A stretch of 64,000 nucleotides of DNA from Guillardia theta CCMP2712 (lineage: Eukaryota > Protista > Cryptophyta), in the NCBI RefSeq assembly GCF_000315625.1, contig NW_005434649.1, positions 186,001 to 250,000 of the forward strand. The letters are read 5' to 3'. The notes below the pieces were generated by a model, which did not search any database, was not told where the DNA came from, and saw nothing but the letters and a program-made list of their open reading frames with translations. The translations under genes and the position numbers were made by a program. Of this stretch, positions 625 to 21,995 are shown in pieces (position 1 is the stretch's first letter; every line of letters begins with the position of its first letter).

Positions 625-1870
625 GGCGCTGTGTACCTGTGAGACCCGATCGCACCACTGATTGAGTCACCTGGAGCGTAGATAAAGCTCTAGTCGGCAA
701 GAAGACTAACAAACAGAATAGTGGCTATTTGTAGCAAGAAGAAGGCGCAGCTTCCTGCACATAATTGTGAGAACTAACCGTGCAATATCTGGACGATATT
801 ACGCAGACTTAGTGCACAGAGCCTTGATCGATCTTGCTTCCTTCTGCGAATAATAGATTACCGAATTAGCATCACTCTAGAATAGATGTTCATCCATTTT
901 CGACCAAATCAGGGTGAAGGGGCGATGAGAAGTTGCAAACAGAAGAAGGTACACTTTCAAACAGATACAAGGGGCGGTCTTAAGAAGACAAGCAACGTTC
1001 TCTGAAATCAGGTTGTCTCTAAGACAGTTGGGTATGCTTACACCAGGATTAGATTTGACGGCACAGGAACAGCAACGAAGAGGTTCATGGTAGTAGGGAC
1101 GAGGAGGGATAGGAAAGGGAGAGAACGAGGAGGTGAAGCATCAGCATGCACTGAGAGGGCTGAGTCATCGGCATAGCTGATACAGCAAACAACATGACTG
1201 CCGCCGCCCTCGACCCTGAGAACAGCATGGCGCGCTAACTTGAAAATTTGGATGGTTGGATCTGGGGTAGGGTGGTCCTCAGGGTGGGGTATTGGTGAGC
1301 AAGAGCATTTTGTTGATAAATGGTGGGTGGGGTGTGGAAATGGGGGTACTTGGAAAATTCAACGGGTTACCCTTTCAACAGGGTAGGTATATTGAGCACA
1401 GCTGAACTTTGACCCATAAAAAGGTAGGGTGAAATCATTAAAAGAAAGGGGGTAATCGAGGAGCGAAACATGTAACAGACCGGTGATGATAAAGATGAGA
1501 GGGTACGTGTTCCCTGAACCGGTCATGGTTATCTATGGGGATCGACATTGTTGTGGTGAACCACGGGGTAGAAACAGGGAAATGCTATGTGGTGGTACTC
1601 CCGGAATACCCGGTCCAATAGATTTTGATGGGTAGTAGTATGGAATATCTGGGGGTAAGGGTACTCAAGAACGTGATCTCCTCCAGGGGTCGTCGAGGAG
1701 GAGTGGGTGGGGGTGGCAAAGTCAGATCAAGAAACATTCAAATAATTCCAACAGGTGAGCAAATATTAAACATTATCGACTCATTTTGCAATTATCACTG
1801 TGAAACATTTGAAGTTCCTGAATTATTAACCCCACGCCGCGAAAAATGTTCACATTTTGAATCTCAACGA

Positions 1871-2006
1871 TACTGATTTTTAACTTAACTTTGAGTAAAT
1901 AAATAAATTCCGATCTCAGTGCCGACCTCGTCGGAGAAAGCAGCACGGGCCCGGCGGCTGGCCCGGGCCACCATGGATACTGATTTTTAACTTAACATTG
2001 AGTAAA
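1871..2006 (+). repeat. Two direct copies of a ~29-bp dispersed motif TACTGATTTTTAACTTAAC(T/A)TTGAGTAAA flanking a GC-rich core
   Basis: Copies at 1871-1899 and 1978-2006 differ by one base. Reverse-complement copies lie at 11201-11230 and 21089-21107 (partial). Confidence 0.75.
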
Positions 2007-3125
2007 GAAATAGGCCAAACGAAACAAACATGTCAAATGGGTGGAGCGTGTCTATGGCAGCGATGGCAGCGACACCGTGCTGCGACTCGAAGGAGCTGAC
2101 GCCGCCGACCAGAGAAAGAGATGAGGAGAGGGAAGTTCCTGCAAACAAGCGAATGATTCAGCAGAGGATCGAAGTGAAGGAATCGCTGCGCTCATCTGTA
2201 ATGATCAAATTGAAAACTTTATGGTCGTGGAGGAAAAAGGTCGAGAATATCCTTCTGCTGCGTCATCTTGCTGTCATATTCAGGTTGAAGTCTATTGCAA
2301 GTTTCACTCTGTTCTGATTGTTGAACGTCGGATCCGAGAAGTTGTTCTAAGGCTAGGAAACTATGTCGAGAAATTTTCAGCTCGTGGAGGAAGCTACTTG
2401 TGGCGTCGCGTTCGGCAGCGTCCCTGTCGATGGCAGCATCACTATCCATGGCAGAGTCGTATTCAGAAACCTTCAACTCGCTAATGCCCGAGACTCTTGC
2501 GTATCTTGAGCATGCAGTTTTGTTGTTTGTTGAACTGACACTGCTTTGACAGAGCGTAAGTCCGTTGGAGCTTGAAGACGGGAGTATACACGAAATGATT
2601 CTGTCTCGCAGGCTAGAAGTCCTTCACGTTTGTAACATGGAAGAGGATCAGAGAGACTAAAAGACGGGTGATGCCTCAGTCTTAGGTGATCGTCGTGACA
2701 CAGCACATTCAGGTCAAACAAATGGTACACTGTGGAGAGAATGAAGTGGGATACTCAGAAAGCATTGATCAGAGAAGTTGTCACCAATAGTGATCATCAT
2801 GTTCTTGCAATCGGGTCCTTTTTCTGGTGCACAGGACCAAATGGGAGGATTGTTGTTCACCAACATGAAACATGGACAAGTCATGAGGATCCATAAAGAT
2901 AAGGCTAGACGAGATTGCAACGGCAACCGGAAGAATTTACCACCATGTGGTTTATATCATCCTGGACATGTAGCACATCTCCATAAAGACAAGCACGTGG
3001 AATTTTGTATTCCATTTCGAAGTTAAAGCTCGTCTAAAATCACTGTATCAATCTCACTGTATCTCTGTAACTTAACTCTATCATGGATTCAGGCTTGCGG
3101 CAAGGCGATCAGGAAATAAAAGCCT

Positions 3126-3710
3126 TCATGTACTCTGTGCCATGTCAGGATTTTCAACGGAATTCACATTGAATCCCAACGCTACTTGCAAGCTTCCTGA
3201 ATTAATTCGAGTTCTCCTCTTTCTTTGGCCATCGACACAAAGCTCCTGTCTCCTAGCGCATCGCGTGCATGGTCGTTGTTCATCACACTTCAGTCGCGAC
3301 TTTCGGCATGACTCGCATGCCTGCAGCACTTGCTCCCGTTTCCGCTGAACTAGAAAGGGCTCGGTGCTCCCTGACGACCATTCATTGTCATCGTGACAAG
3401 GAACTCCAATGCCATAGCATTGAGCGCAGGGCCGAGAGTCGCCACATTTGATCTTCTTGACCTGACAGTTCTTACAGGCTTTCATGGCTCTGCGCTTGAG
3501 CTTCAAGTCGAAGGACCAAGGTCCGAAAGCTGAGCTGCGGGACTCGCACGCGTCTGCACGGCCAACACGAATGCAACGAGAGCAAGGGCGTTCGTCGTCG
3601 CAGCGAGTCTTGGATCGACGGCATTCCTCACAGGCAGCAAACAGGCGGGAAGGCGAGGGCGCATCCATGGAAAGGAGGGAAGAGATGGAGGGAAAGGCTC
3701 GGCTTGCCAT
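3126..3710 (-). CDS. Intronless protein with three tandem Zn(II)2Cys6 (GAL4-type) binuclear clusters
   Basis: Three CX2CX6CX5CX2CX6-8C motifs: CEECRRSKTRCDDERPCSRC..C, CKNCQVKKIKCGDSRPCAQC..C and CESCRKSRLKCDEQRPCTRC..C. Basic NLS-like QRKRRTR. First ATG at 3710. Confidence 0.9.
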   Translation of the reverse strand: MASRAFPSISSLLSMDAPSPSRLFAACEECRRSKTRCDDERPCSRCIRVGRADACESRSSAFGPWSFDLKLKRRAMKACKNCQVKKIKCGDSRPCAQCYGIGVPCHDDNEWSSGSTEPFLVQRKREQVLQACESCRKSRLKCDEQRPCTRCARRQELCVDGQRKRRTRINSGSLQVALGFNVNSVENPDMAQST

Positions 3711-3967
3711 GCGCTCTATGGTGTGGTGCAATCCGTGTTCGGAAGGTCGGAGTGCGGATGGCTACGTAGTGGGGTGGACCTAGATAGCAAGTAGGTCCTA
3801 GTAGTGAGATACCCACACGGGGTTGGCGTATTTGTCCGTCATGACCCCTATCTCCACAGATACATTTGGGATAATTATAGGGTGGGGTGGTATCGATGGC
3901 ACTGTGGCAGGGGAGGAGCAAGGACTCGGACCGAGAGCCGAAGATGAAAAGAGAGGCAGTGAGACGA

Positions 3968-5248
3968 TGCAGATTGATGCACACTTGTAGAGCTTGTTAG
4001 ATACAACACGATTACAGATTGATGTGCACTTGTAGAGCTTGTTAGATACAACACGATTACAGATTGATGCACACTTGTAGAGCTTGTTAGATACAACACG
4101 ATTGCAGATTGATGCGCACTTGTAGAGCTTGTTAGGTACAACACGAATGCAGATTGATGCGCACTTGTAGAGCTTGTTAGATACAACACGATTACAGATT
4201 GATGCACACTTGTAGAGCTTGTTAGATACAACACGATTGCAGATTGATGCGCACTTGTAGAGCTTGTTAGGTACAACACGAATGCAGATTGATGCGCACT
4301 TGTAGAGCTTGTTAGATACAACACGATTGCAGATTGATGCGCACTTGTAGAGCTTGTTAGATACAACACGATTGCAGATTGATGCGCACTTGTAGAGCTT
4401 GTTAGATACAACACGATTGCAGATTGATGCACACTTGTAGAGCTTGTTAGATACAACACGATTGCAGATTGATGCGCACTTGTAGAGCTTGTTAGGTACA
4501 ACACGAATGCAGATTGATGCGCACTTGTAGAGCTTGTTAGATACAACACGATTGCAGATTGATGCGCACTTGTAGAGCTTGTTAGATACAACACGATTAC
4601 AGATTGATGTGCACTTGTAGAGCTTGTTAGATACAACACGATTACAGATTGATGCGCACTTGTAGAGCTTGTTAGATACAACACGAATGCAGATTGATGC
4701 GCACTTGTAGAGCTTGTTAGATACAACACGATTACAGATTGATGCACACTTGTAGAGCTTGTTAGATACAACACGATTGCAGATTGATGCGCACTTGTAG
4801 AGCTTGTTAGGTACAACACGAATGCAGATTGATGCGCACTTGTAGAGCTTGTTAGATACAACACGATTGCAGATTGATGCGCACTTGTAGAGCTTGTTAG
4901 ATACAACACGATTGCAGATTGATGCGCACTTGTAGAGCTTGTTAGATACAACACGATTGCAGATTGATGCACACTTGTAGAGCTTGTTAGATACAACACG
5001 ATTGCAGATTGATGCGCACTTGTAGAGCTTGTTAGGTACAACACGAATGCAGATTGATGCGCACTTGTAGAGCTTGTTAGATACAACACGATTGCAGATT
5101 GATGCGCACTTGTAGAGCTTGTTAGATACAACACGGATGCAGATTGATGCGCACTTGTAGAGCTTGTTAGATACAACACGATTGCAGATTGATGCGCACT
5201 TGTAGAGCTTGTTGGATACAACACGATTACAGATTCATTTACACTTGT
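3968..5248. repeat. 45-bp minisatellite, ~28 copies, with an internal 540-bp (12-unit) higher-order duplication
   Basis: Unit GCACTTGTAGAGCTTGTTAGATACAACACGATTGCAGATTGATGC repeated head to tail with a few recurrent SNPs. The variant pattern at ~4141-4590 recurs at ~4681-5130. Confidence 0.97.
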
Positions 5249-5426
5249 AATTAGATTCTTTAAACATTACTAGACCCTGGACATTTACAATGCACGACCG
5301 ACGTCTCCCGCTGGCTCCCTCGCGCCTCGAACGGTCACGAGGAGCAGGAGACTCGCCCTGAAAAGAATACTCTTGATTCACCGTCACCTGACTTGACTGT
5401 GTCCCGTGTCGACTTTCAGTCTCGCG

Positions 5427-11389: not shown

Positions 11390-12375
11390 ATGTATGCGAA
11401 TCAACAGGAGCATCCTATTTCAAGCACAGATGACACTCAGGCAAAGAAGCAAAAGACAACAAGCAAGTTGGTGCAACCGGTGAACTCGCCCACAAGCCCG
11501 TCGTACTCGCCCACAAGCCCGTCGTACTCGCCCACAAGCCCGTCGTACTCGCCCACAAGCCCGTCGTACTCGCCCACAAGCCCGTCGTACTCGCCCACAA
11601 GCCCGTCGTACTCGCCCACAAGCCCGTCGTACTCGCCCACAAGCCCGTCGTACTCGCCCACAAGCCCGTCGTACTCGCCCACAAGCCCGTCGTACTCGCC
11701 CACAAGCCCGTCGTACTCGCCCACAAGCCCGTCGTACTCGCCCACAAGTCCGTCGTACTCGCCCACAAGCCCGTCGTACTCGCCCACAAGCCCGTCGTAC
11801 TCGCCCACAAGCCCGTCGTACTCGCCCATAAGCCCGACATTTTCGCCTTCAAACCTTACTTTCTCTCCACCAAGAATCGTGCTTTCGCCACCTTCAAGCC
11901 CTAAGCTTCCTCCGATCGGCCCTCTGTTGTCAAGAGATCAATCTTCAGGCCATGAACAGCGAGGACGGATAAGCTTCTGCGTTTGTAACTTGAATCCTTC
12001 AGCCACAGAACTGAATCTCTCACAGTCAGTGCCGTGACGGCACTTAATCTGGTTTGAATTTGTCATTCAGATTATTCGAAGGAGCTGGACCAATCAGAAA
12101 TGTTAAGGTTATGCCCAAAAAGGATGGAAAGGTAGGAGGAGTCAGGTTCATGTAAATCATGTGATTTGATCATTTTCAATTCAGCGTACCACAATCGGGT
12201 TCGTCAATTACGAAGATGAGACAGTCTTGAGTAAATGCCGTGAGGTACGTGAGATCAAGTCAAAGAAAATCCTAAGAGAGTTTGTCGCCAGGTTTGTAAA
12301 GCCTTGGATAAAAACATTCCCAGTTGGAATTTTGGCTTGCGGGTGAAGCGCCTATTGTGCATTCCTTGCAATTGA
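11390..12375 (+). CDS. Non-RPB1 protein with an RNA polymerase II CTD-type heptad array fused to a C-terminal RRM
   Basis: 15 perfect YSPTSPS plus flanking NSPTSPS and YSPISPT. Splicing GT-AG introns 12025-12070, 12132-12184 and 12245-12291 gives, in frame, [78 protein letters not shown] (RNP2 FCVCNL, RNP1 TTIGFVNY). The 3' end is approximate. Confidence 0.75.
11483..11839 (+). repeat. 21-bp coding minisatellite (TACTCGCCCACAAGCCCGTCG)n encoding YSPTSPS
   Basis: 15 units at 11504-11818 are identical except one synonymous AGC>AGT. First and last units are degenerate. Confidence 0.97.
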
Positions 12376-12999
12376 TTTGTTGTAGTCATATTGAGATCTG
12401 AAACTTGCAACAGATTTACGTGAGTGAGCAAGTAAAAGTGGAACCACGATTGAGCTTGTTTTCGAACCGGTGATACAACATAGACTGCTCTTTTCAATTC
12501 AAAGCTTGTTGACATATTTTCTTCGATTCGACAAATTGCTTTGGTCATCAAAGAAAGAGAAGACGGGGTGTGTGACGATGATTGCGTTGCCAGACAGGCT
12601 GACTGAAAACATATGCAGACTTTGATTTAGACTTCTGGGGATCTGACCTCTCAGACTCGGACTCCTCGGACAGGTCCATTTGATCGGCACAGACGTTGCA
12701 TCTTGACAAGTTTTGCAGTGTCGATGACTTCGATGATTTGTTCTCTAGTCCCTCACTTTTCAGCTCGCCGATACAGCGGTACTCGTTTTCCACTCTTCTC
12801 ACTGCATACTCACTCATCTTGGCTGCAGGAGTTCTCTCTACGATCACCCGCGGCTGGTCAAGCTCTCATCTCCTGTTTACCTGCGTTAAAAACTACTCTG
12901 CAGCTGAATTCTCCAGGATCAGACCTGATCACAAGCAGAGGGTCCGGCGGCAAGCGGCACGTCGTTACCTGCACTCCATCGCGTGCCTTCAGCGAGGAA

Positions 13000-13578
13000 A
13001 TGCGCACGTACGTGGAGGAGCAGGTGCGATGCCCGAGGAAGCAATGGATTTACGAGATCCTTGAGGGGACGCGAGAGAAGGAGGCGGTGCTAGTTGAGAC
13101 TGCTGACATGATCTTCCTCCCTGACACCGAGGCTCGCAACGACAAGGATACAGTCAACTGGTTGGCAATCATCAAGGATCGCTCCCTCCGATCCCTCAGG
13201 GACTTGCGCGGCGAGCATGCGGATATGCTGCAGCGGGCTCAGACAACCTGCGTCGACTACATCTTGAACACGAGAAACTTTGACAAGCACGACGTGATGG
13301 CGTACATCCACTACCTGCCGAGCGTCTTCCAGCTCCACATTCACTTCTGCGCGCCTTATGGCTCCTATACCGCAAGGGACGCGATCTACAAGCTCCATCC
13401 CCTCGACAACGTGATCTCAAACTTGCGCATCGACTCGGACTACTACCGCAAAGCTCACATCAGCACTGTAGTCACTGAGAGGGCGCTGATCGACATCTAC
13501 AGCAAGGAAGAGATTCATGAAGCAGAGCCGGTGAGCCCGCAGAGTATGAAGCAGATCTCTAGCTCCTTGGACAACTAG
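13000..13578 (+). CDS. DcpS-like m7GpppX diphosphatase (scavenger decapping, HIT family), intronless, short N-terminus; start uncertain (ORF open from 12703)
   Basis: QWIYEILEG..E, FLPD, WLAI..DRSLRSLRDLRGEH, YIHYLPSVFQLHIHF (DcpS HIT motif region) and HPLDNVISNL..DSDYY. Confidence 0.85.
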   Translation: MRTYVEEQVRCPRKQWIYEILEGTREKEAVLVETADMIFLPDTEARNDKDTVNWLAIIKDRSLRSLRDLRGEHADMLQRAQTTCVDYILNTRNFDKHDVMAYIHYLPSVFQLHIHFCAPYGSYTARDAIYKLHPLDNVISNLRIDSDYYRKAHISTVVTERALIDIYSKEEIHEAEPVSPQSMKQISSSLDN

Positions 13579-13926
13579 CCTGAGCATCAGTCGTCTGATA
13601 GCATGAAGTAATTCTACCTCCGAACAGCAAAGAAAGCTTCTTATCCGAGTACACTAACATCAAAGTCCAGCAGCTCTCCGGTGAAACATTGTCGGCTCAC
13701 AACGTTCACAAACCTCGATCGTCAAAGACTCTCTGCAGCTTCTTCTCCTGTTGCTTCCAAAGCACTATTGAAATCCTCACAGGCAAGTGTACTGAGACTT
13801 GTCAGGCGATGTCCGGTAGCAGTCGTTATGTAGCATACGCTCTTCCTACTGAAAAAAGTCACACTCTCATCCGGTTCTTGTCTGCCTTGCGTCTCAACCA
13901 CGCAAAGCTCTGTTATTCCTGCCCTC

Positions 13927-14154
13927 TGATAGGATATGTTTGCTGACTTCCTGTCTTTCTTAAGTAGGTGTCCTAGGCAGTCTCGTTTCTTAGGAAATTA
14001 GATTACTTACTTTTCTTTATCTCTAACGTTGATTTGGAGTAAATTGCCGTTGAATCGTGCATTGCTGTCACACGCTTGTTCTTTGGTTTCTTGACGGGAT
14101 CACTTCGTGTGTCAACACTGGATCGAGAGATACTTTTAGGAAGTTTTCCTAACA
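13927..14154 (+). repeat. LTR copy, inverted relative to the element's coding strand
   Basis: TGATAGGA...TCCTAACA. By eye it is the exact reverse complement of 19016-19243, and identity extends 5 bp further (TTTTG). Confidence 0.95.
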
Positions 14155-17100
14155 TTTTGCCCATGGACTCATGCAACTTCAAATCGCGTGTCGACAACAT
14201 AACGAAGTCGCCAACATTGAATTGCAGATCCTTCCGAGATTTTTTCATAGTCTTCTCCTTCTGAATCGCTGACAACGTTAACGCATCGCGAGCCAAGTCG
14301 ACGGCTGCCATGATCTTGTCACGAACTTCCTCCACGTCCTCAGCACGATCGTCAGGAGTCAGGTCCAAAACTGTACGAACGTCTCTGCCATAGATGATCT
14401 CGAACGGCGTAAGATTCGTCGCATCTCTAACGGTCGTATTCCAAATTGTCTCCAGATGTACGAGATAATCATCCCAAGACTTGCTATCGTGCCGCATGCA
14501 GTAGATCCGCAAGGCTTCAACTATGACACTGTTGAACTTCTCAACTCGTCCCTGCGACTGCGGATGATAAACGCTGCTATGGCGTATGTCGATTCCCATG
14601 AGAGTGAACAACTCAGTCCAAAATTCTGAAGAAAATAAACTCCCGTTGTCCGAGACCAACGTTTTGCAAATCCCTTGAGCACGATAAACCGTCTCGAAAT
14701 ACGCACGAGCTGCTCCTTTCGATGTGATCGTCTTCTTACACGGATACAAGAACACCCTGTTGGAAAACTGATCGAGAAACACCAAGACGCTGTCGTTTCC
14801 CCGCTTTGAGGTGGGCAGCGCTGTAAGCAAATCCACTGAAACCTTCTCGAAACGCTCACGCGGAACCAAATGACTGTGCGGTTCGCCAGCCGCTCGTTGC
14901 TTGTAACTCTTGCCTTGCAAACACTCCGCACACGAGTTGACATAGTTCGCGACGTCCTTACTCATGTTCGGCCAGAAGGCAATTTGCGACGCCTTCAAGA
15001 AAGTCTTCGTCTTCCCTACATGGCAAGAATCGTCATGAATCAGGCGCAAGAACTTCGCTCGAGAATGATAAGGAATACACACACGTTCCCGACCAAGCGA
15101 GTCCTTCCAAAACAAGACTCCGTCTCGCAGAAAATAAGTTCGACGCTGCATTGGAACTAGGTTTCCCTGTTGAATGTCCTGGAGAACCTGCGCGAAATAT
15201 CTGTCCTGCTGATAATTTTTGACGACATCAGCTGTAAATGCGTTGTCTGTTGCTAGAGCGTAGCAGTGCGTAACAACCTCTGCATCACTGTCAGTCACCT
15301 CCATCACCTCCCCCTCCCCAGAGGACGAGATGGTACAAAGCAAGGTAGGATCCAAGTTGACCAAATCAGCACGCTGTCGAATCTCATCGTCTAACGCACT
15401 CTGTGACGGCACAACCGTAGAATCGTTCGGACGAGATAGGTAGTCAGCGATGACATTCTCTTCTCCAGGAATGTAGGAGATTTCATCCAAATCGAAATCA
15501 GCAAGAATTTGACTCCATCGAAACAATCGACCCGTGAGGTTGCTCTGCGTGAGAAGATACTTGAGACTCTTGTGATCTGTACGAACCAACACCCTGCGTC
15601 CGTACAAGTAAAACTTGAAATGCACCAATGCTGAAATCAATCCCAGAAGCTCTTTCTCGCGCACTGAATAATTTACCTCGGCACTGTTGAGACGCTTGCT
15701 GAAGAAGGCGACAGGCAATAGATCCTCGCCATGCTGTTGTGTCAAGACAGCACCAATGGCGTAGTCGCTCGCATCGACCAACACGCAAGTAGCTAACGCT
15801 GGGTTGAAGTACCTTAAAACAGGGGCTGATATCAAACGCTTCTTCAGCTCCTGAAAGGCCGCCTCTTGCGCGTCATCCCAACAAAACTTCACATTCTTAC
15901 GTAGAAGATTCGTTAGCGGAAGTGCTAACGCTGCGTAATCCGGCACATACTTCCTGTAAAAGTTCAACACTCCCAAAAACGACTTGAGTTCTTTCGCTGT
16001 TTGCGGTGCCGAACGATCCACAATCGCTTGTACCTTTTTCTCTTGCGTCGAGACGCCTGCCTCGCTGATGTGGAAACCGAGGAAATCAATTTCAGAGTGA
16101 AACAGCTTACATTTCGACTTCTTGACAAACAACTGCTCTTTACGAAATCGATCCAGAGCCTGTCGAAGCAAACGCTCATGTCTCTCCAAGCTCCCATAAC
16201 TGATCAAGCAAACATCGTCGATATAGCTCAGGCAATTCTCGAGACCTTGAAGAACACTCTCGAGAAATTTCTGAAATTGATTTGCCGAATCTACCAAGCC
16301 GAAAGGAATCCTCCGATACTGATATTTCCCAAACTTCGTGATGAAACAGGTGTACTTCCTCGACGCGGCGTCCAACTCAAGTTGCCAAAAACTTTTCGCC
16401 AGGTCGAGTGAGCTGATCCACAACCGTGCCCCAGGTTCTGAAGCATAACGCGCTCTCTCTTCCATGATCTTTCGACCCACTCGTTCTATCAGCTCCATCA
16501 CCAACGGCAATGGAAAGTTATCATTCCGGATCAAGCTGTTAACGAACCTCATATCAGTGCAAAAACGCAATGTACCATCAGACTTTTTTGTGAAGATTAC
16601 GGGAGACGTAAACTCAGACGTCGAAGGTTCAATGATCCCACGCTCCAACAAGAAGGCAAGATTCGCTTTCAACTCCTCCTCCAACGCGAGTGGCACAGGG
16701 TAAGGTTTCTTTTGCACCGCCTCAACGTTATCCTTGAGTCGAATCGTCGCCTTGAAGGACCGGTCAAGAACAACGTCACTGGGAATGTCGTCACGAATGA
16801 CATCCGAATAATCTTCCATGATCGTCTCGGCAGCCTTCTGCTCGAGACTCGTGGCACCATCTGTCGGCTGAGCCATCTCCAACAGGTTGCACAAATGTAC
16901 CACGTACCATTCCGAATCGTTCTGCTTGAGGTCTCTCACTGCCTCAGTGTAAGAAAGTACCTGACACAGCGAGGCGTCCGCAGCCCCGAATTGCTTGTTT
17001 GTTGGGCAAACAAGTAACGGAAGCTCGACCATCTTCTTGCGCCACTTGGCAAAGACTCTGGGGTGACCCGCATCAATCACGATCTTGTTCGCACGCATCC

Positions 17101-17539
17101 ATTCCCATGACAGGATCATGTCCGCATGCGGCAAGTCAAGCATGTAGAACGACCCACTACTCTTGAAACTGGAGCCTACGCCCAATTTTGTCTGGAAAAC
17201 CATATCAGACAACCTACTCGTCCCGTCGGCCATGATAACTCGTTTGCGAACTTCTGCATCCGTGACCGACAGACCAAATTTGCGCACTGCCTTCGTGCTG
17301 ATAAACGACTCTTCAGCAGCTGTATCGAGCAATGCATTAAGAACTATGGATTGGTTCCCGAACCGAAAGGTCACCGGTACCATAGGTAGAGATTTGATCC
17401 TGTGAGAGTCAACGGTGATACGACATTGACGAACATCCCTAGGATCTTCTGGCGGAGGTGTGCCCGGGTCGAAGACAACATTCGAAGTCTGCAAACCCGT
17501 GCCCCCGTCGATTGCGCCCTCCGCGGCAACCGACGTCAC
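14003..17539 (-). CDS. pol: Pol polyprotein (aspartic protease, reverse transcriptase, RNase H, DDE integrase); C-terminus reads into the inverted LTR
   Basis: LLDTAAEESFIS (PR); LRFCTDMR, LDLAKSFWQ, PFGL, YIDD (RT); DASDYAIGAVL (RH); H..H..CAEC zinc finger, SVDLL, SDNG, GRVEKFN (IN). No internal stops. Confidence 0.96.
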   Translation of the reverse strand: MTSVAAEGAIDGGTGLQTSNVVFDPGTPPPEDPRDVRQCRITVDSHRIKSLPMVPVTFRFGNQSIVLNALLDTAAEESFISTKAVRKFGLSVTDAEVRKRVIMADGTSRLSDMVFQTKLGVGSSFKSSGSFYMLDLPHADMILSWEWMRANKIVIDAGHPRVFAKWRKKMVELPLLVCPTNKQFGAADASLCQVLSYTEAVRDLKQNDSEWYVVHLCNLLEMAQPTDGATSLEQKAAETIMEDYSDVIRDDIPSDVVLDRSFKATIRLKDNVEAVQKKPYPVPLALEEELKANLAFLLERGIIEPSTSEFTSPVIFTKKSDGTLRFCTDMRFVNSLIRNDNFPLPLVMELIERVGRKIMEERARYASEPGARLWISSLDLAKSFWQLELDAASRKYTCFITKFGKYQYRRIPFGLVDSANQFQKFLESVLQGLENCLSYIDDVCLISYGSLERHERLLRQALDRFRKEQLFVKKSKCKLFHSEIDFLGFHISEAGVSTQEKKVQAIVDRSAPQTAKELKSFLGVLNFYRKYVPDYAALALPLTNLLRKNVKFCWDDAQEAAFQELKKRLISAPVLRYFNPALATCVLVDASDYAIGAVLTQQHGEDLLPVAFFSKRLNSAEVNYSVREKELLGLISALVHFKFYLYGRRVLVRTDHKSLKYLLTQSNLTGRLFRWSQILADFDLDEISYIPGEENVIADYLSRPNDSTVVPSQSALDDEIRQRADLVNLDPTLLCTISSSGEGEVMEVTDSDAEVVTHCYALATDNAFTADVVKNYQQDRYFAQVLQDIQQGNLVPMQRRTYFLRDGVLFWKDSLGRERVCIPYHSRAKFLRLIHDDSCHVGKTKTFLKASQIAFWPNMSKDVANYVNSCAECLQGKSYKQRAAGEPHSHLVPRERFEKVSVDLLTALPTSKRGNDSVLVFLDQFSNRVFLYPCKKTITSKGAARAYFETVYRAQGICKTLVSDNGSLFSSEFWTELFTLMGIDIRHSSVYHPQSQGRVEKFNSVIVEALRIYCMRHDSKSWDDYLVHLETIWNTTVRDATNLTPFEIIYGRDVRTVLDLTPDDRAEDVEEVRDKIMAAVDLARDALTLSAIQKEKTMKKSRKDLQFNVGDFVMLSTRDLKLHESMGKMLGKLPKSISRSSVDTRSDPVKKPKNKRVTAMHDSTAIYSKSTLEIKKSK

Positions 17540-17548
17540 TGGTTTAAA
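17452..17548 (-). promoter_or_regulatory. Predicted -1 programmed ribosomal frameshift signal between gag and pol
   Basis: U UUA AAC in the gag frame (17542-17548), a 6-nt spacer, then a 10-bp stem CGUCGGUUGC/GCAAUCGACG (17506-17535). pol is in the -1 frame with a GTGA overlap. Confidence 0.8.
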
Positions 17549-18948
17549 GCTGACGGTTGTTCAGACCTCGACAAGAGAGGGCACTTGTCTCTGAAGTGAC
17601 CGAACTTCTGACAGTTGTAGCACTTCACCTTCTTCTTGTCGAACTTCTTCTCCTTGCCCTGCATGTCCTCGCTCTGAGTAGGAGCCGACCGCTTGCCCTC
17701 ATGACGAGATTGTGCTTGGGTGAAATGAAGGCTCGTCTGACCGTCTTGTGGGTGTCTCTGACGCAGATTAAGAGCTTCGCGATACAACTGCGGCAAATAC
17801 TTGCCCATCTCCGACGGCTCCGCATGATAAGTAATCCCAAACGTCTTACCATCGCGTTCCATCAGCATGCTCAATTCCTTCCGTAGCATAGCACGTGCAT
17901 AGTCCATTTGTATTCCATCGACAAAGACGCGTTCCCAGCTACCTAGCGCAACACTAGGTCTCTTGGACACAAGGTAGCACGCCTGCAGGTGTGTAACCAT
18001 CGCCTGGAATCTTGCGGTGTACGCCTCAACGGACTCCTTGGGCCCTTGCCTAGCCTGCTTCTGCACATGACGCTCAAGTTTCTCAATAAACTCGAATGGT
18101 AACCATTTCAACAACAGTTTCTCCACAAACTGTTCCCAATCACCATGCTCAGCAGAGAACTGATCTTGCTCAACCATCGGGAGTGTGGCCCACCATAGCT
18201 GCACCTCCGGTCCGAACGCAGAGATGGCCGCTCCTACCCATCGATGGCGTGCTATACGGTGAAATTTACACCTGCCTTCGATATATCCGAGCCATGAGAC
18301 CACCGACCTCTCCATGGTCTGCTCACCATTGTACTGCAACAATGACTTCGGATCCAGCTTGCAAATCTGGCCACCGTCATTCTCCGCATGCTTAAGCTTG
18401 GGAGGCTTGTCCTCGGGTTCCCGAACCCGCTCACAAAGCAGTACACGCATCTCCGCTGCCTCCTTGGCAAGCCTACGGTTCTCTCGCTGGGATTCCTCAA
18501 GTGCCCTCACAAGATCCTGGAGTTTGCGATCAGCTTCTCTCTGGGATTCTGCGAGTGCATTTACGAGATTGTGCATCTTATCCATGTTGTTCTGTTCCAC
18601 AGACCTGAGCTCTCTACATGTCCGGCGTAGGTGCTCGTTTTCCTCCACGATGTCACGAAAACTGGCTTTCAAGGGAAGGGCGGGACCATCGTTTTCATCC
18701 CTGCTCTCCAACCATGAAGGCACTGTACGACCACTGTCAACACTGTCGGCACGTACGACAGCCTCCTGCTGAATGACAGTTTCCGACGGATCGTACGCAT
18801 GTGACTGCGGCGACATGCCTGTCACCGTAGGAAAGCGCGGCTCTGCTGACCCATTCAATGTCTCCTTCACAAAGCTGCCCAACCGCGACATGCTTCGACT
18901 CATGAAGTCCGAGACAACGCTACCTGACTGAATGCTCGTCCTATCCAT
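17536..18948 (-). CDS. gag: Gag protein with coiled coil, capsid-like region and CCHC zinc knuckle
   Basis: RQGPKESVEAYTARF (major-homology-like) and CYNCQKFGHFRDKC (CX2CX4HX4C). Lies directly upstream of pol. Confidence 0.93.
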   Translation of the reverse strand: MDRTSIQSGSVVSDFMSRSMSRLGSFVKETLNGSAEPRFPTVTGMSPQSHAYDPSETVIQQEAVVRADSVDSGRTVPSWLESRDENDGPALPLKASFRDIVEENEHLRRTCRELRSVEQNNMDKMHNLVNALAESQREADRKLQDLVRALEESQRENRRLAKEAAEMRVLLCERVREPEDKPPKLKHAENDGGQICKLDPKSLLQYNGEQTMERSVVSWLGYIEGRCKFHRIARHRWVGAAISAFGPEVQLWWATLPMVEQDQFSAEHGDWEQFVEKLLLKWLPFEFIEKLERHVQKQARQGPKESVEAYTARFQAMVTHLQACYLVSKRPSVALGSWERVFVDGIQMDYARAMLRKELSMLMERDGKTFGITYHAEPSEMGKYLPQLYREALNLRQRHPQDGQTSLHFTQAQSRHEGKRSAPTQSEDMQGKEKKFDKKKVKCYNCQKFGHFRDKCPLLSRSEQPSALNQ

Positions 18949-18994
18949 GTTTTCTTGAACAACTTCTTTCAACACAACAACTCCGAGAGGAAAA

Positions 18995-19012
18995 CCAGGC
19001 CTTCGCGTACCA
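18995..19012 (-). promoter_or_regulatory. Primer binding site TGGTACGCGAAGGCCTGG
   Basis: Begins with TGG 3 nt after the LTR's terminal CA. Resembles the complement of an initiator-Met tRNA 3' end (TGGTA...CCWGGTTT); the cognate tRNA is not confirmed. Confidence 0.75.
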
Positions 19013-19015
19013 AAA

Positions 19016-19243
19016 TGTTAGGAAAACTTCCTAAAAGTATCTCTCGATCCAGTGTTGACACACGAAGTGATCCCGTCAAGAAACCAAAGAACAAGCGTGT
19101 GACAGCAATGCACGATTCAACGGCAATTTACTCCAAATCAACGTTAGAGATAAAGAAAAGTAAGTAATCTAATTTCCTAAGAAACGAGACTGCCTAGGAC
19201 ACCTACTTAAGAAAGACAGGAAGTCAGCAAACATATCCTATCA
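19016..19243 (-). repeat. 5' LTR (228 bp)
   Basis: TG..CA termini on the minus strand, followed by the PBS and gag. Confidence 0.95.
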
Positions 19244-19769
19244 CCCTCTTAAACTCATCATCATCCGCTTACAAGCAGGCTTCCTCATCTTCCAGAAGTG
19301 GCAGTGCCCTATGACGAAGTCTGCTCCTTCACCCGCTGCACATTCCTGCTCCGCAGGCTGGGTCCTGCTCCGCAGGACCGAAGACTGTCCAGAAAACCTG
19401 TCCACTAGCAGCACGGCGGATAACTCGCGCAGTTCTTTTCCCTAGAGCAGGGGCAGGCGGATCAAACCCGATGGTGAGACGACGACCTTGCCTTTAGTCG
19501 GAAAGACTTACGAGGTGATGTAGGGCTGTGTGTACCAACTACTGTCCCAGCGAGGCAGGGCCATGGCTGACGAAATGTGGCTGCTGGAGAAGCTCAACTC
19601 GATTTCTATTCAAACGTCGCAGAGAAATGAAAACAGAAGACAAGCTAATGCTAAAGAGAAACAAGTCCCTCTCTCTGCTCCTTCTCTCAACTCATCGATT
19701 CCGATTTGCAGTTCCTGCTTTCCATCCAAGATAGTGGCTCACGTTCAACCACCATTTTCATTCCCGGTT

Positions 19770-20609
19770 TCAAACGCCTTGTTGCAGTTGAGAAGTGATG
19801 AAAAAATCCATGGACTCCATAGAGGGCTGCTGAAAGCTATACGTCGCGCTTCCCTCTTCCCGCTTTGCCCCCGATCCCTCTGCAACTTCCTCCAATGCCA
19901 GCTCTTCCCACCATCCTCCTTCGATGCTCTCCTCCGACGCTGCCTCGTCTGCCAGGCCCGTCCATGGCTGTAGCTTCCCCACCTCTGGGTTCACCAGCAG
20001 ATCCTCCCAGCTGTAGCCATTTGTATTCTTGTCCTCGTCTTCGATTCCCTCTTGCCTTCCCTCATCCTCCTTCCCGCTCCTTCGCCGCTTCACCCGCCAG
20101 TCCACGCACATATGAAGGCTCCTCACGCATCGACTGCATGGCCTTACGGAGTCGCACTTGAGCCGCGACCTCCGGCATCGCTCGCATGCCTGCACGACTT
20201 GCTCTCGCCTCCGCTGCAGGACTGGAGGCAGCGCTCCATGCCCTAGCCCTCCTTCGCTGTAGCAAACCTCACCCATCCGGTAGCACCGAGCGCAGGGCCG
20301 AGCGTCGCCGCAGCGCACCTTCTTGATCTGGCAGCTCAGACAAGCCTTGGTCGCCCTATGGCTTGACTGCAGCACATGGCCTTGAGACCTCTGGTCGTTA
20401 CCCTCTGACAGGCGGGAGCATGACGAGGCCTTGGCAGAGCGGATGCAGCGGGAGCATGGGCTTTGCTCGTCACAGCGGGTCTTGCGCAGCCGGCACTGGA
20501 CACAGGCGGTGAAGGATCTTTTGGAAGGAGGGGAGGGAGTAGGAGAGTAGGAGAGGGAAGAGGGAAGGAGAGAAACGGGGAGCATGGGGTAGGAGAGGCT
20601 GGCGAGCAT
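19770..20609 (-). CDS. Intronless triple Zn(II)2Cys6 protein, paralog of 3126-3710, with an acidic C-terminal tail
   Basis: CVQCRLRKTRCDEQSPCSRC, CLSCQIKKVRCGDARPCARC and CERCRRSRLKCDSVRPCSRC. Shares the linker QR(R/K)REQV(V/L)QAC. The acidic/Trp tail is activation-domain-like. Confidence 0.9.
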   Translation of the reverse strand: MLASLSYPMLPVSLLPSSLSYSPTPSPPSKRSFTACVQCRLRKTRCDEQSPCSRCIRSAKASSCSRLSEGNDQRSQGHVLQSSHRATKACLSCQIKKVRCGDARPCARCYRMGEVCYSEGGLGHGALPPVLQRRREQVVQACERCRRSRLKCDSVRPCSRCVRSLHMCVDWRVKRRRSGKEDEGRQEGIEDEDKNTNGYSWEDLLVNPEVGKLQPWTGLADEAASEESIEGGWWEELALEEVAEGSGAKREEGSATYSFQQPSMESMDFFITSQLQQGV

Positions 20610-21346
20610 TGCTCGTGTGGCAACCTTGCAAGTGCTTGTAAAGGAACCTGACGAGGGTCACGGCATATTGAAAGGCAAGAGACCATAGGGGGTGGGGTAC
20701 TGAAGCATACACAGAGGGGGGTGCTGTTATGATGGGGTGGCACATATGCGTTGAAGTCAACCGGGAAGTAAGCTTCTCCGAATTGAAAGGCAGACCAACT
20801 CGCGACCCTTCGGAGCCTCGGAGATGCTTGTGACTCGATTCTCTATGACCCGTCCGCACGCTGCACGTACTAAAACCAAGTTTACTACTCGGAAAGGGAA
20901 CGAGTCATGGCACTGATTGAAAGGCAGCCTGATGCTGTCACGGGGGTCCTGGGGTCGATGAAAGGGGGTAGGTTTACAACTACAGAACTTGCGGCACTCA
21001 GGGCCCTCAGACTGATAATACGTGATATGTGAACTAAAATAGTTTTACAGCAGCAATAAGAATAGTAAATATTAACACCTTCTTGTTGTTTACTCAAAGT
21101 TAAGTTAGGCCATGCGGCGAGAAGAGAAAAGACAGCGAGAACAACCCTCATCCTACCGACTGCTGTCCCTCAAACTTAACTGATACCTTTACTTAACTGC
21201 GCGCACCGGGACCATTCCCGCGCCACGACGACATTTTAAAAAAAACTTTTACAGCAGAAAAAAAGGAAACTCATGACCAAGTTCCATGTTGGTCATTCAG
21301 ACTTCAACAAGGGACGGGACTTTCCCTTTTCCACACCCGAGAGGTA

Positions 21347-21995
21347 AACACACGTCTTGCTGACCCTGATGCCTGTTTGATTCAAGTCGATCTTTGAATG
21401 AAACACACACGTCTTGCTGACCCTGATGCCTGTTTGATTCAAGTCGATCCTTGAATGAATCGGAAACTTACGTCTTGCTGACCCTGATGCCTGTTTGATT
21501 CAAGTCAATCTTTGAATGAAACACACACGTCTTGCTGACCCTGATGCCTGTTTGATTCAAGTCGATCCTTGAATGAATCGGAAACATACGTCTTGCTGAC
21601 CCTGATGCCTGTTTGATTCAAGTCAATCTTTGAATGAAACACACACGTCTTGCTGACCCTGATGCCTGTTTGATTCAAGTCAATCCTTGAATGAATCGGA
21701 AACTTACGTCTTGCTGACCCTGATGCCTGTTTGATTCAAGTCGATCTTTGAATGAAACACACGTCTTGAAACACACGTCTTGCTGACCCTGATGCCTGTT
21801 TGATTCAAGTCAATCTTTGAATGAATCGGAAACACACGTCTTGCTGACCCTGATGCCTGTTTGATTCAAGTCAATCTTTGAATGAAACACACGTCTTGCT
21901 GACCCTGATGCCTGTTTGATTCAAGTCAATCTTTGAATGAAACACACGTCTTGCTGACCCTGATGCCTGTTTGATTCAAGCCGATCTTTCAATGC
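21347..21995. repeat. Tandem array: 11 copies of a ~50-bp core with alternating 5-11-bp linkers (57/61-bp dimer)
   Basis: Core CGTCTTGCTGACCCTGATGCCTGTTTGATTCAAGTC(G/A)ATC(T/C)TTGAATGAA starts at 21353, 21410, 21471, 21528, 21589, 21646, 21707, 21776, 21837, 21892 and 21947. Linkers are ACACACA, TCGGAAACWTA or ACACA. Confidence 0.97.

Follow-up and report, generated by a model that had tools for sequence, protein, structure and literature searches.

A Ty3/Gypsy chromovirus insertion with inverted long terminal repeats in Guillardia theta: probable outcome of a misdirected plus-strand transfer

How can a retrotransposon that encodes a DDE integrase, and that sits between the two copies of a short target-site duplication (TSD), have its two long terminal repeats (LTRs) facing each other? 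This question is raised by a 5317-bp Ty3/Gypsy element that occupies positions 13927-19243, on the minus strand, of a 64,000-nucleotide stretch of the Guillardia theta CCMP2712 genome (GCF_000315625.1, contig NW_005434649.1, positions 186,001 to 250,000; hereafter the window). The window corresponds to C25:186001-250000 of an assembly whose 87,145,349 bases in 669 contigs defined the scope of our genome searches. The results presented here indicate that the element is a young copy and probably the outcome of one copying accident in an ordinary Ty3/Gypsy chromovirus, in which an illegitimate plus-strand transfer would have generated a complementary DNA (cDNA) with two U3 (unique 3′) ends that was subsequently inserted by the integrase.

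Self-comparison of the window reveals that the element terminates in two arms (13927-14159 and 19011-19243) defining an inverted repeat of 233 nt with 100% complementarity. Each arm is composed of a 228-bp TG..CA LTR (TGATAGG...CCTAACA) and the pentanucleotide TTTTG, reproducing the arrangement that an original prediction, made without database searches, had proposed for this locus. The 5′ LTR (19016-19243, minus strand), delimited by comparison of the arms and covered at its tip by a contig from read set X1, has the normal orientation for a minus-strand element. The other LTR (13927-14154), recognized by its identity to the first arm and by a private variant that both share, is reversed; its sense strand is the plus strand, antisense to gag and pol, and its outer end is the U3 tip TGATAGG. 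The junctions with the host therefore consist of a U3 tip on both sides of the element. Immediately outside these tips, the sequence CCCTC can be read directly at 13922-13926 and again at 19244-19248, as had also been predicted, and its length is that of the TSDs made by the family to which the element belongs. A flank duplication matching at five out of five positions has a chance probability of ~1/1024.

The internal region encodes gag (17536-18975, minus strand) and pol (14003-17539, minus strand; 1178 residues), both free of stop codons, with the pol frame at -1 relative to gag. Pfam searches identify Retrotrans_gag and zf-CCHC (the CCHC knuckle) in gag, and protease, RVT_1, RNase H, Integrase_H2C2 and rve, in that order, in pol. 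A TGG-initiated motif resembling a primer-binding site (PBS), TGGTACGCGAAGGCC (18998-19012, minus strand), begins 3 nt past the 5′ LTR, after a TTT spacer, and is kept at all 5′ LTRs of the family. Hence, both the open reading frames (ORFs) and the PBS of the original prediction were recovered. In the assembly, the 15-nt complement of this PBS-like motif occurs only in copies of the element, and the three sites matching it with one mismatch are not tRNA genes; the primer may correspond to a shorter or internal tRNA match.

Genome searches place the element in an LTR family with at least 20 copies at 96-98% identity, plus more diverged ones. At least five family members present direct LTRs, and the full-length direct-LTR siblings that were measured span 5767 bp (C181), 5768 bp (C90) and 5715 bp (C1). 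Same-strand LTR pairs are also found in C4, C154 and C206, some of them broken by gaps or extra sequence. Wherever their flanks pair, family members show 5-bp TSDs: AGGTG in C181, GTCCC in C154, AAAAC in C206, CCTCC for a copy split between C570 and C163, and GGAGT for a solo LTR in C16. Every 5′ LTR in the family is followed by TTT and the TGG-initiated PBS-like motif, and every 3′ LTR has the polypurine tract (PPT) AGGGAGCGAAA just upstream. The intact pol of the C90 copy (1260 residues) ends in SH3_Tf2-1 (GPY/F; residues 1117-1179) and Chromo (1204-1236) domains, identifying the family as a chromovirus. The family is recently active. In a protein search with the C-terminal 299 residues of pol from the window, the nearest relatives were chromovirus pols at 66% and 59% identity, and one MMETSP transcript fragment was 96% identical. 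No other inverted LTR pair or inverted segment of the family was detected among the loci examined. Internal-deletion derivatives are present as well (L008 in C163, L023 in C12, L026 in C13 and L028 in C41), all of them in direct orientation, with examples that join element nt 4503 to 5385 and nt 1111 to 5202.

The inverted-LTR copy is collinear with these siblings, at ~98.5% identity, from its first base to element nt 5091. Beyond this point it continues as the reverse complement of the 5′ LTR plus 5 nt, with a 7-nt overlap at the switch in BLAST alignments. The 443 bp of sibling sequence that are missing encompass the SH3/GPY-F part of the integrase, the chromodomain, a short 3′ untranslated stretch and the PPT. 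The PPT motif of the family is thus absent from this copy, in agreement with the earlier remark that no clear tract could be seen, and the sense-orientation 3′ R (repeat) region is not present either. At the protein level, pol equals its sibling at 142 of 143 residues up to ...LKLHESMGKM, where the sibling proceeds into KIRFIGPFKI, containing the GPY/F motif, and the inverted-LTR copy reads into 52 codons of antisense LTR before reaching its stop at 14003. This comparison substantiates the predicted exit from integrase ahead of GPY/F and shows that this copy is missing ~124 integrase codons, which in siblings specify the chromodomain and the greater part of the SH3/GPY-F domain. No relative recovered in the C-terminal protein search shares the antisense-LTR tail. 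Without a PPT, a sense 3′ R or the integrase terminus that bears GPY/F and the chromodomain, the copy cannot replicate further and is a dead-end insertion.

With respect to Ty3/Gypsy chromoviruses, the element therefore has the expected order of gag (CCHC), protease, reverse transcriptase, RNase H, H2C2 and DDE integrase, as well as TG..CA LTRs, a PBS-like motif and the short TSD made by DDE integrases. It departs from them in its reversed second LTR, in its two U3 host junctions, and in the loss of the PPT and of the GPY/F and chromodomain C-terminus, which is cut off at a junction located just ahead of the GPF motif. The siblings present direct LTRs, PPT and PBS-like motif together.

One of the two options advanced in the original prediction was that the locus represents a DDE-integrase lineage that propagates with inverted LTRs, and the intact gag, the mostly intact pol and the presence of two tips acceptable to integrase are compatible with it. 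Nonetheless, a search of the whole assembly, spanning 87 Mb, located the 81-nt junction between pol and the inverted LTR only once; the pol half alone occurs at seven places, and the LTR half alone at 5′ LTRs. The lack of exact matches to a 36-nt version of the junction among JGI metagenome contigs is uninformative. Furthermore, all other examined LTR pairs of the family are direct, and the copy lacks the PPT, the sense 3′ R and a complete integrase, with no relative carrying its antisense-LTR tail. A propagating lineage is thus extremely unlikely, and for this assembly we reject it on the basis of the single junction copy and the missing replication parts.

The likeness to DIRS elements invoked in the same prediction is confined to shape, that is, to the inverted terminal repeats described for DIRS elements, and does not extend to enzyme or TSD. 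DIRS elements use a tyrosine recombinase, whereas the element in the window combines a DDE integrase with a 5-bp duplication and is an isolated anomaly within a family of direct-LTR elements. Pfam identified rve and Integrase_H2C2 in pol, and no recombinase domain was detected in the four antisense ORFs scanned. Propagation with inverted ends, as in DIRS, is likewise at odds with a unique junction and with the direct orientation of the other examined LTR pairs.

The sequences of the two arms bear directly on the number of events involved. The arms show no differences, and both carry a private variant at LTR nt 130. The 16 sibling LTRs compared all lack this variant and depart from the arms at 4-7 sites. 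This shared private variant indicates that both arms were copied from one template, and not acquired through two independent insertions. Similarly, the 5-bp TSD indicates concerted joining of the two outer ends in a single step. The U3 and U5 (unique 5′) tips of this LTR, TGATAGGA and TGTTAGGA, are identical at 7/8 positions, so the integrase could plausibly bind two U3 ends.

Comparison of the junction region and the BLAST overlap locate the join of pol with the inverted LTR at 14153-14159, where the plus strand reads CATTTTG (the CA that ends the LTR, the TTT spacer and the TG of the PBS) and siblings read CATCTTG. In element sense, the region is GGGCAAGATGAAAAT in sibling pol, GGGCAAAATGTTAGG in the inverted-LTR copy and GTACCAAAATGTTAGG in the reverse complement of the 5′ LTR and PBS. 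The microhomology at the junction (CAAGATG versus CAAAATG) can be described as a 6/7 match or as 3 nt of perfect identity (CAA), and the CAAAA microhomology originally proposed has to be amended, given that all siblings read CAAGATG at the pol site. Matches to the junction motif at 6/7 or better occur at only 9 sites in 5312 internal positions. At base 14156 the copy has the letter of the PBS spacer, which no sibling pol shares, and the reversed piece thus retains at least 2 nt past the LTR-terminal CA. This piece begins at the exact U3 tip and stops 2-5 nt beyond U5, as does plus-strand strong-stop DNA after removal of the tRNA primer; an unprocessed U5 end would likewise stop at this inner edge, whereas a random breakpoint would be expected there ~0.2% of the time. 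Self-integration was also considered as the source of the inner join, and was ruled out by the same retained nucleotides: had integrase processed and joined this end, it would terminate at CA, and integrase therefore did not make this join.

These features are best accommodated by an error in the plus-strand step of replication. During reverse transcription in the particle, two plus strands would anneal via their 3′ ends. The first would be plus-strand strong-stop DNA, composed of U3-R-U5, the TTT spacer and the initial 2 nt of the PBS, and ending in ...CATTTTG-3′. The second would be a growing plus strand that had arrived at CAAGATG in the integrase region, 443 nt short of the 3′ LTR. Pairing at 6/7 positions, each strand would copy its partner out to the 5′ end, and both of these 5′ ends would be U3 tips set by PPT cleavage. 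The predicted product is a blunt duplex, ordered as LTR, PBS, gag, truncated pol and backwards LTR, with a genuine U3 tip at either extremity. The DDE integrase of the family would then accept the two U3 ends and generate its usual 5-bp TSD. This scheme corresponds to the other option of the original prediction, a two-U3 cDNA formed via strong-stop transfer, which agrees with every test made here and is favored by the unique junction, by the existence of siblings with a PPT and a longer integrase, and by the location of the breakpoint at the U5/PBS edge.

Several observations weigh against this interpretation. The sequence alone does not separate a strand-transfer path from the end-joining of two DNA pieces, and the placement of the switch inside CAA depends on one base, which might conceivably have arisen as a private mutation. 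In public read contigs, support is restricted to the right LTR/flank junction and does not reach the internal junction. Across read sets X1, X7 and X14, the only contig that covers 14189 shows the letter found in siblings and, at 14153, departs into their integrase sequence. In addition, the assembly pairs the flanks of other family copies inconsistently. Lastly, an empty site was not found, since the tandem C134 paralogues of the locus are too diverged for homology to be detected where the element is inserted. No joint skipping the element was reported in the read contigs either.

The first of these observations leads to an alternative in which a 3′-truncated cDNA and an LTR-length fragment were co-integrated by their U3 ends, and the host joined the inner ends via CAA. 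In vitro, two separate donor ends are routinely integrated in concert, and two molecules joined in this manner are predicted to yield the same structure, with two U3 tips, a 5-bp TSD, microhomology at the inner join and unprocessed nucleotides past CA. Such an origin, however, needs a double-stranded fragment ending exactly at U3 and at U5 + 2-5 nt, although standard replication does not generate such an intermediate, and it also requires that the complex contain a second, broken cDNA. We regard it as improbable because it calls for more coincidences than a single strand transfer.

An assembly or cloning artefact, in which a chimeric clone or a misjoin within a ~98%-identical repeat conceals a normal or otherwise different locus, is improbable to a similar degree. 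It finds support in the absence of the internal junction allele from the contigs of three read sets and in the inconsistent pairing of flanks among the C90, C4 and C1 copies, the C4 copy being gapped. Specifically, the 5′ flank of C90:184400-190167 (GTCAG) equals the 3′ flank of C4:403582-409189, which contains gaps, and the 5′ flank of C1:704574-710288 (AGAAG) equals the 3′ flank of the C90 copy. Loci with flanks paired across contigs carry the labels L012, L014, L017, L005 and L006, and reflect either genuine exchange of sequence among copies or misjoins within a repeat that is 98% identical.

Against an artefact, the non-palindromic TSD means that collapse of a normal copy could not generate the left junction CCCTC|TGATAGG, which must consequently be contained in reads. 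The left and internal junctions lie 228 nt apart, a span expected within single Sanger reads, and copy-specific variants are found 30-90 nt inside the junction in a region without gaps. Moreover, a matching TSD combined with microhomology right at the U5/PBS border is unlike a random chimera. The entire 64-kb window is free of assembly gaps, and the 28 private substitutions spread along the copy, some of them 30-90 nt from the junction, make it possible to assign reads to it. An X1 contig spans 19214-19400 (LTR tip, TSD and right flank) with no differences, and a contig of metagenome run X14 with private alleles of the copy likewise speaks for a correct assembly. Since read contigs drop rare variants, and the inverted-LTR copy represents about one in ten, the missing junction is not proof of its absence. 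Subject to a small reservation for the artefact, the inverted-LTR structure reported earlier is hence confirmed.

Environmental DNA offered further material on the element. Runs X14, X18 and X19 (freshwater, lake and runoff metagenomes) contain 28-65% of its sampled words, and an X14 contig carries private alleles of the inverted-LTR copy around 18124-18712, which indicates that this strain, or one very close to it, occurs at that source. An X1 contig of low depth (2.7, with 23 letters on its shorter side) joins 14154, at the U5 end, to 19064, a position inside the oppositely oriented LTR; it could represent either noise or an LTR-LTR palindrome formed in a different molecule.

The host sequence around the insertion was also compared with its paralogues. 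Two tandem C134 units (C134:71404-77648) are collinear, at 75-89% identity, with window positions 13782-19799 on both sides of the element, and the ~640-bp host segment holding the insertion site has the opposite orientation relative to them. This inverted segment lends some plausibility to a rearrangement after insertion, be it an inversion, fold-back replication, or a nested insertion with deletions. Yet all single inversions of the present sequence were considered and none restores a normal element, leading us to discard a host-level inversion as the cause. Fold-back of the 5′ LTR, in turn, would run into the reverse-complemented 5′ flank (CCCTCTTAAAC...), in place of the other flank and TSD that are found, and the nested-insertion route requires two base-exact deletions. 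Post-insertion rearrangement is accordingly very unlikely, though less so than a propagating lineage.

Among described phenomena, the nearest to the plus-strand transfer favored here are the template-switching complexes of Triticeae LTR retrotransposons (Sabot and Schulman 2007; PMC1950507), in which wrong strand transfer gives rise to abnormal cDNAs that are inserted by integrase. These complexes are LTR-internal-LTR-internal-LTR arrays with all LTRs direct, and inverted forms are not mentioned in that work. The inverted-LTR copy has the TSD and the near-identical outer LTRs that are characteristic of them. In contrast, it has no third, internal LTR, but two LTRs, one of them reversed, and a single internal region, and the error would have taken place in the plus-strand step, leaving one LTR reversed and part of the element deleted.

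The closest analogy for an insertion that is inverted in part yet retains its TSD is LINE-1 (L1) twin priming, in which one event yields a partly inverted, truncated and TSD-flanked insertion (PMC2837659). The inversion in L1 arises from a second priming event through microhomology. This is a matter of analogy and not of membership: L1 uses target-primed reverse transcription at the chromosome, whereas the event proposed here is placed in the particle, before the action of the DDE integrase. Insertion of a DDE-integrase LTR element via two U3 ends was not described in any open-access report returned by our literature searches, although most of the older retrovirology literature, with its possible precedents, was beyond their reach. 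Within the open-access literature, inverted LTRs coupled to a retrotransposon integrase led only to DIRS papers, and inverted LTRs coupled to a TSD led to none.

If the assembly is right, the locus constitutes a natural record of a DDE integrase taking a two-U3 cDNA and making a normal TSD, and of a misdirected plus-strand transfer via a 6/7-nt match, both of which are usually seen only in vitro. Copies of this kind would be missed or misclassified by LTR finders that demand direct repeats. It is conceivable, though unlikely, that inverted-LTR insertions are a recurrent and stereotyped by-product of chromovirus replication in Guillardia theta and thereby the LTR counterpart of L1 twin priming, with strong-stop DNA priming on a second plus strand and integrase inserting the resulting two-U3 cDNAs. 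Were this the case, each insertion would be a convergent-promoter or panhandle locus able to feed RNA silencing of its own family. A single dead-end insertion has no wider consequence unless it is recurrent or a source of small RNA.

Evidence on transcription comes from one RNA run, X24, of which ~6% was read. The family is transcribed, with RNA reads passing from the PPT into U3 and poly(A) located at LTR nt 129-133, downstream of AGTAAA. In the inverted LTR, the AGTAAA signal lies at 14038-14043 and the poly(A) site of the family at ~14055-14059, both on the plus strand, the latter position being defined by poly(A)-tailed RNA reads that end at 14055 and 14059. RNA reads from the internal region have the alleles of siblings. 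Within the element, antisense depth is zero except in three bins, where it does not exceed 0.5. Convergent transcription from the two LTR promoters could produce double-stranded RNA against the family.

The host flanks of the element present additional features. A 291-residue ORF at 12703-13578 (plus strand), ~350 nt upstream of the insertion, contains a DcpS_C domain (scavenger decapping enzyme, HIT-like). Tandem arrays are found at 11484-11855 and 21346-21994, with self-match offsets at multiples of 63 nt and of ~59 nt, and the array at 11484-11855 also matches the C134 paralogues in 21-nt steps.

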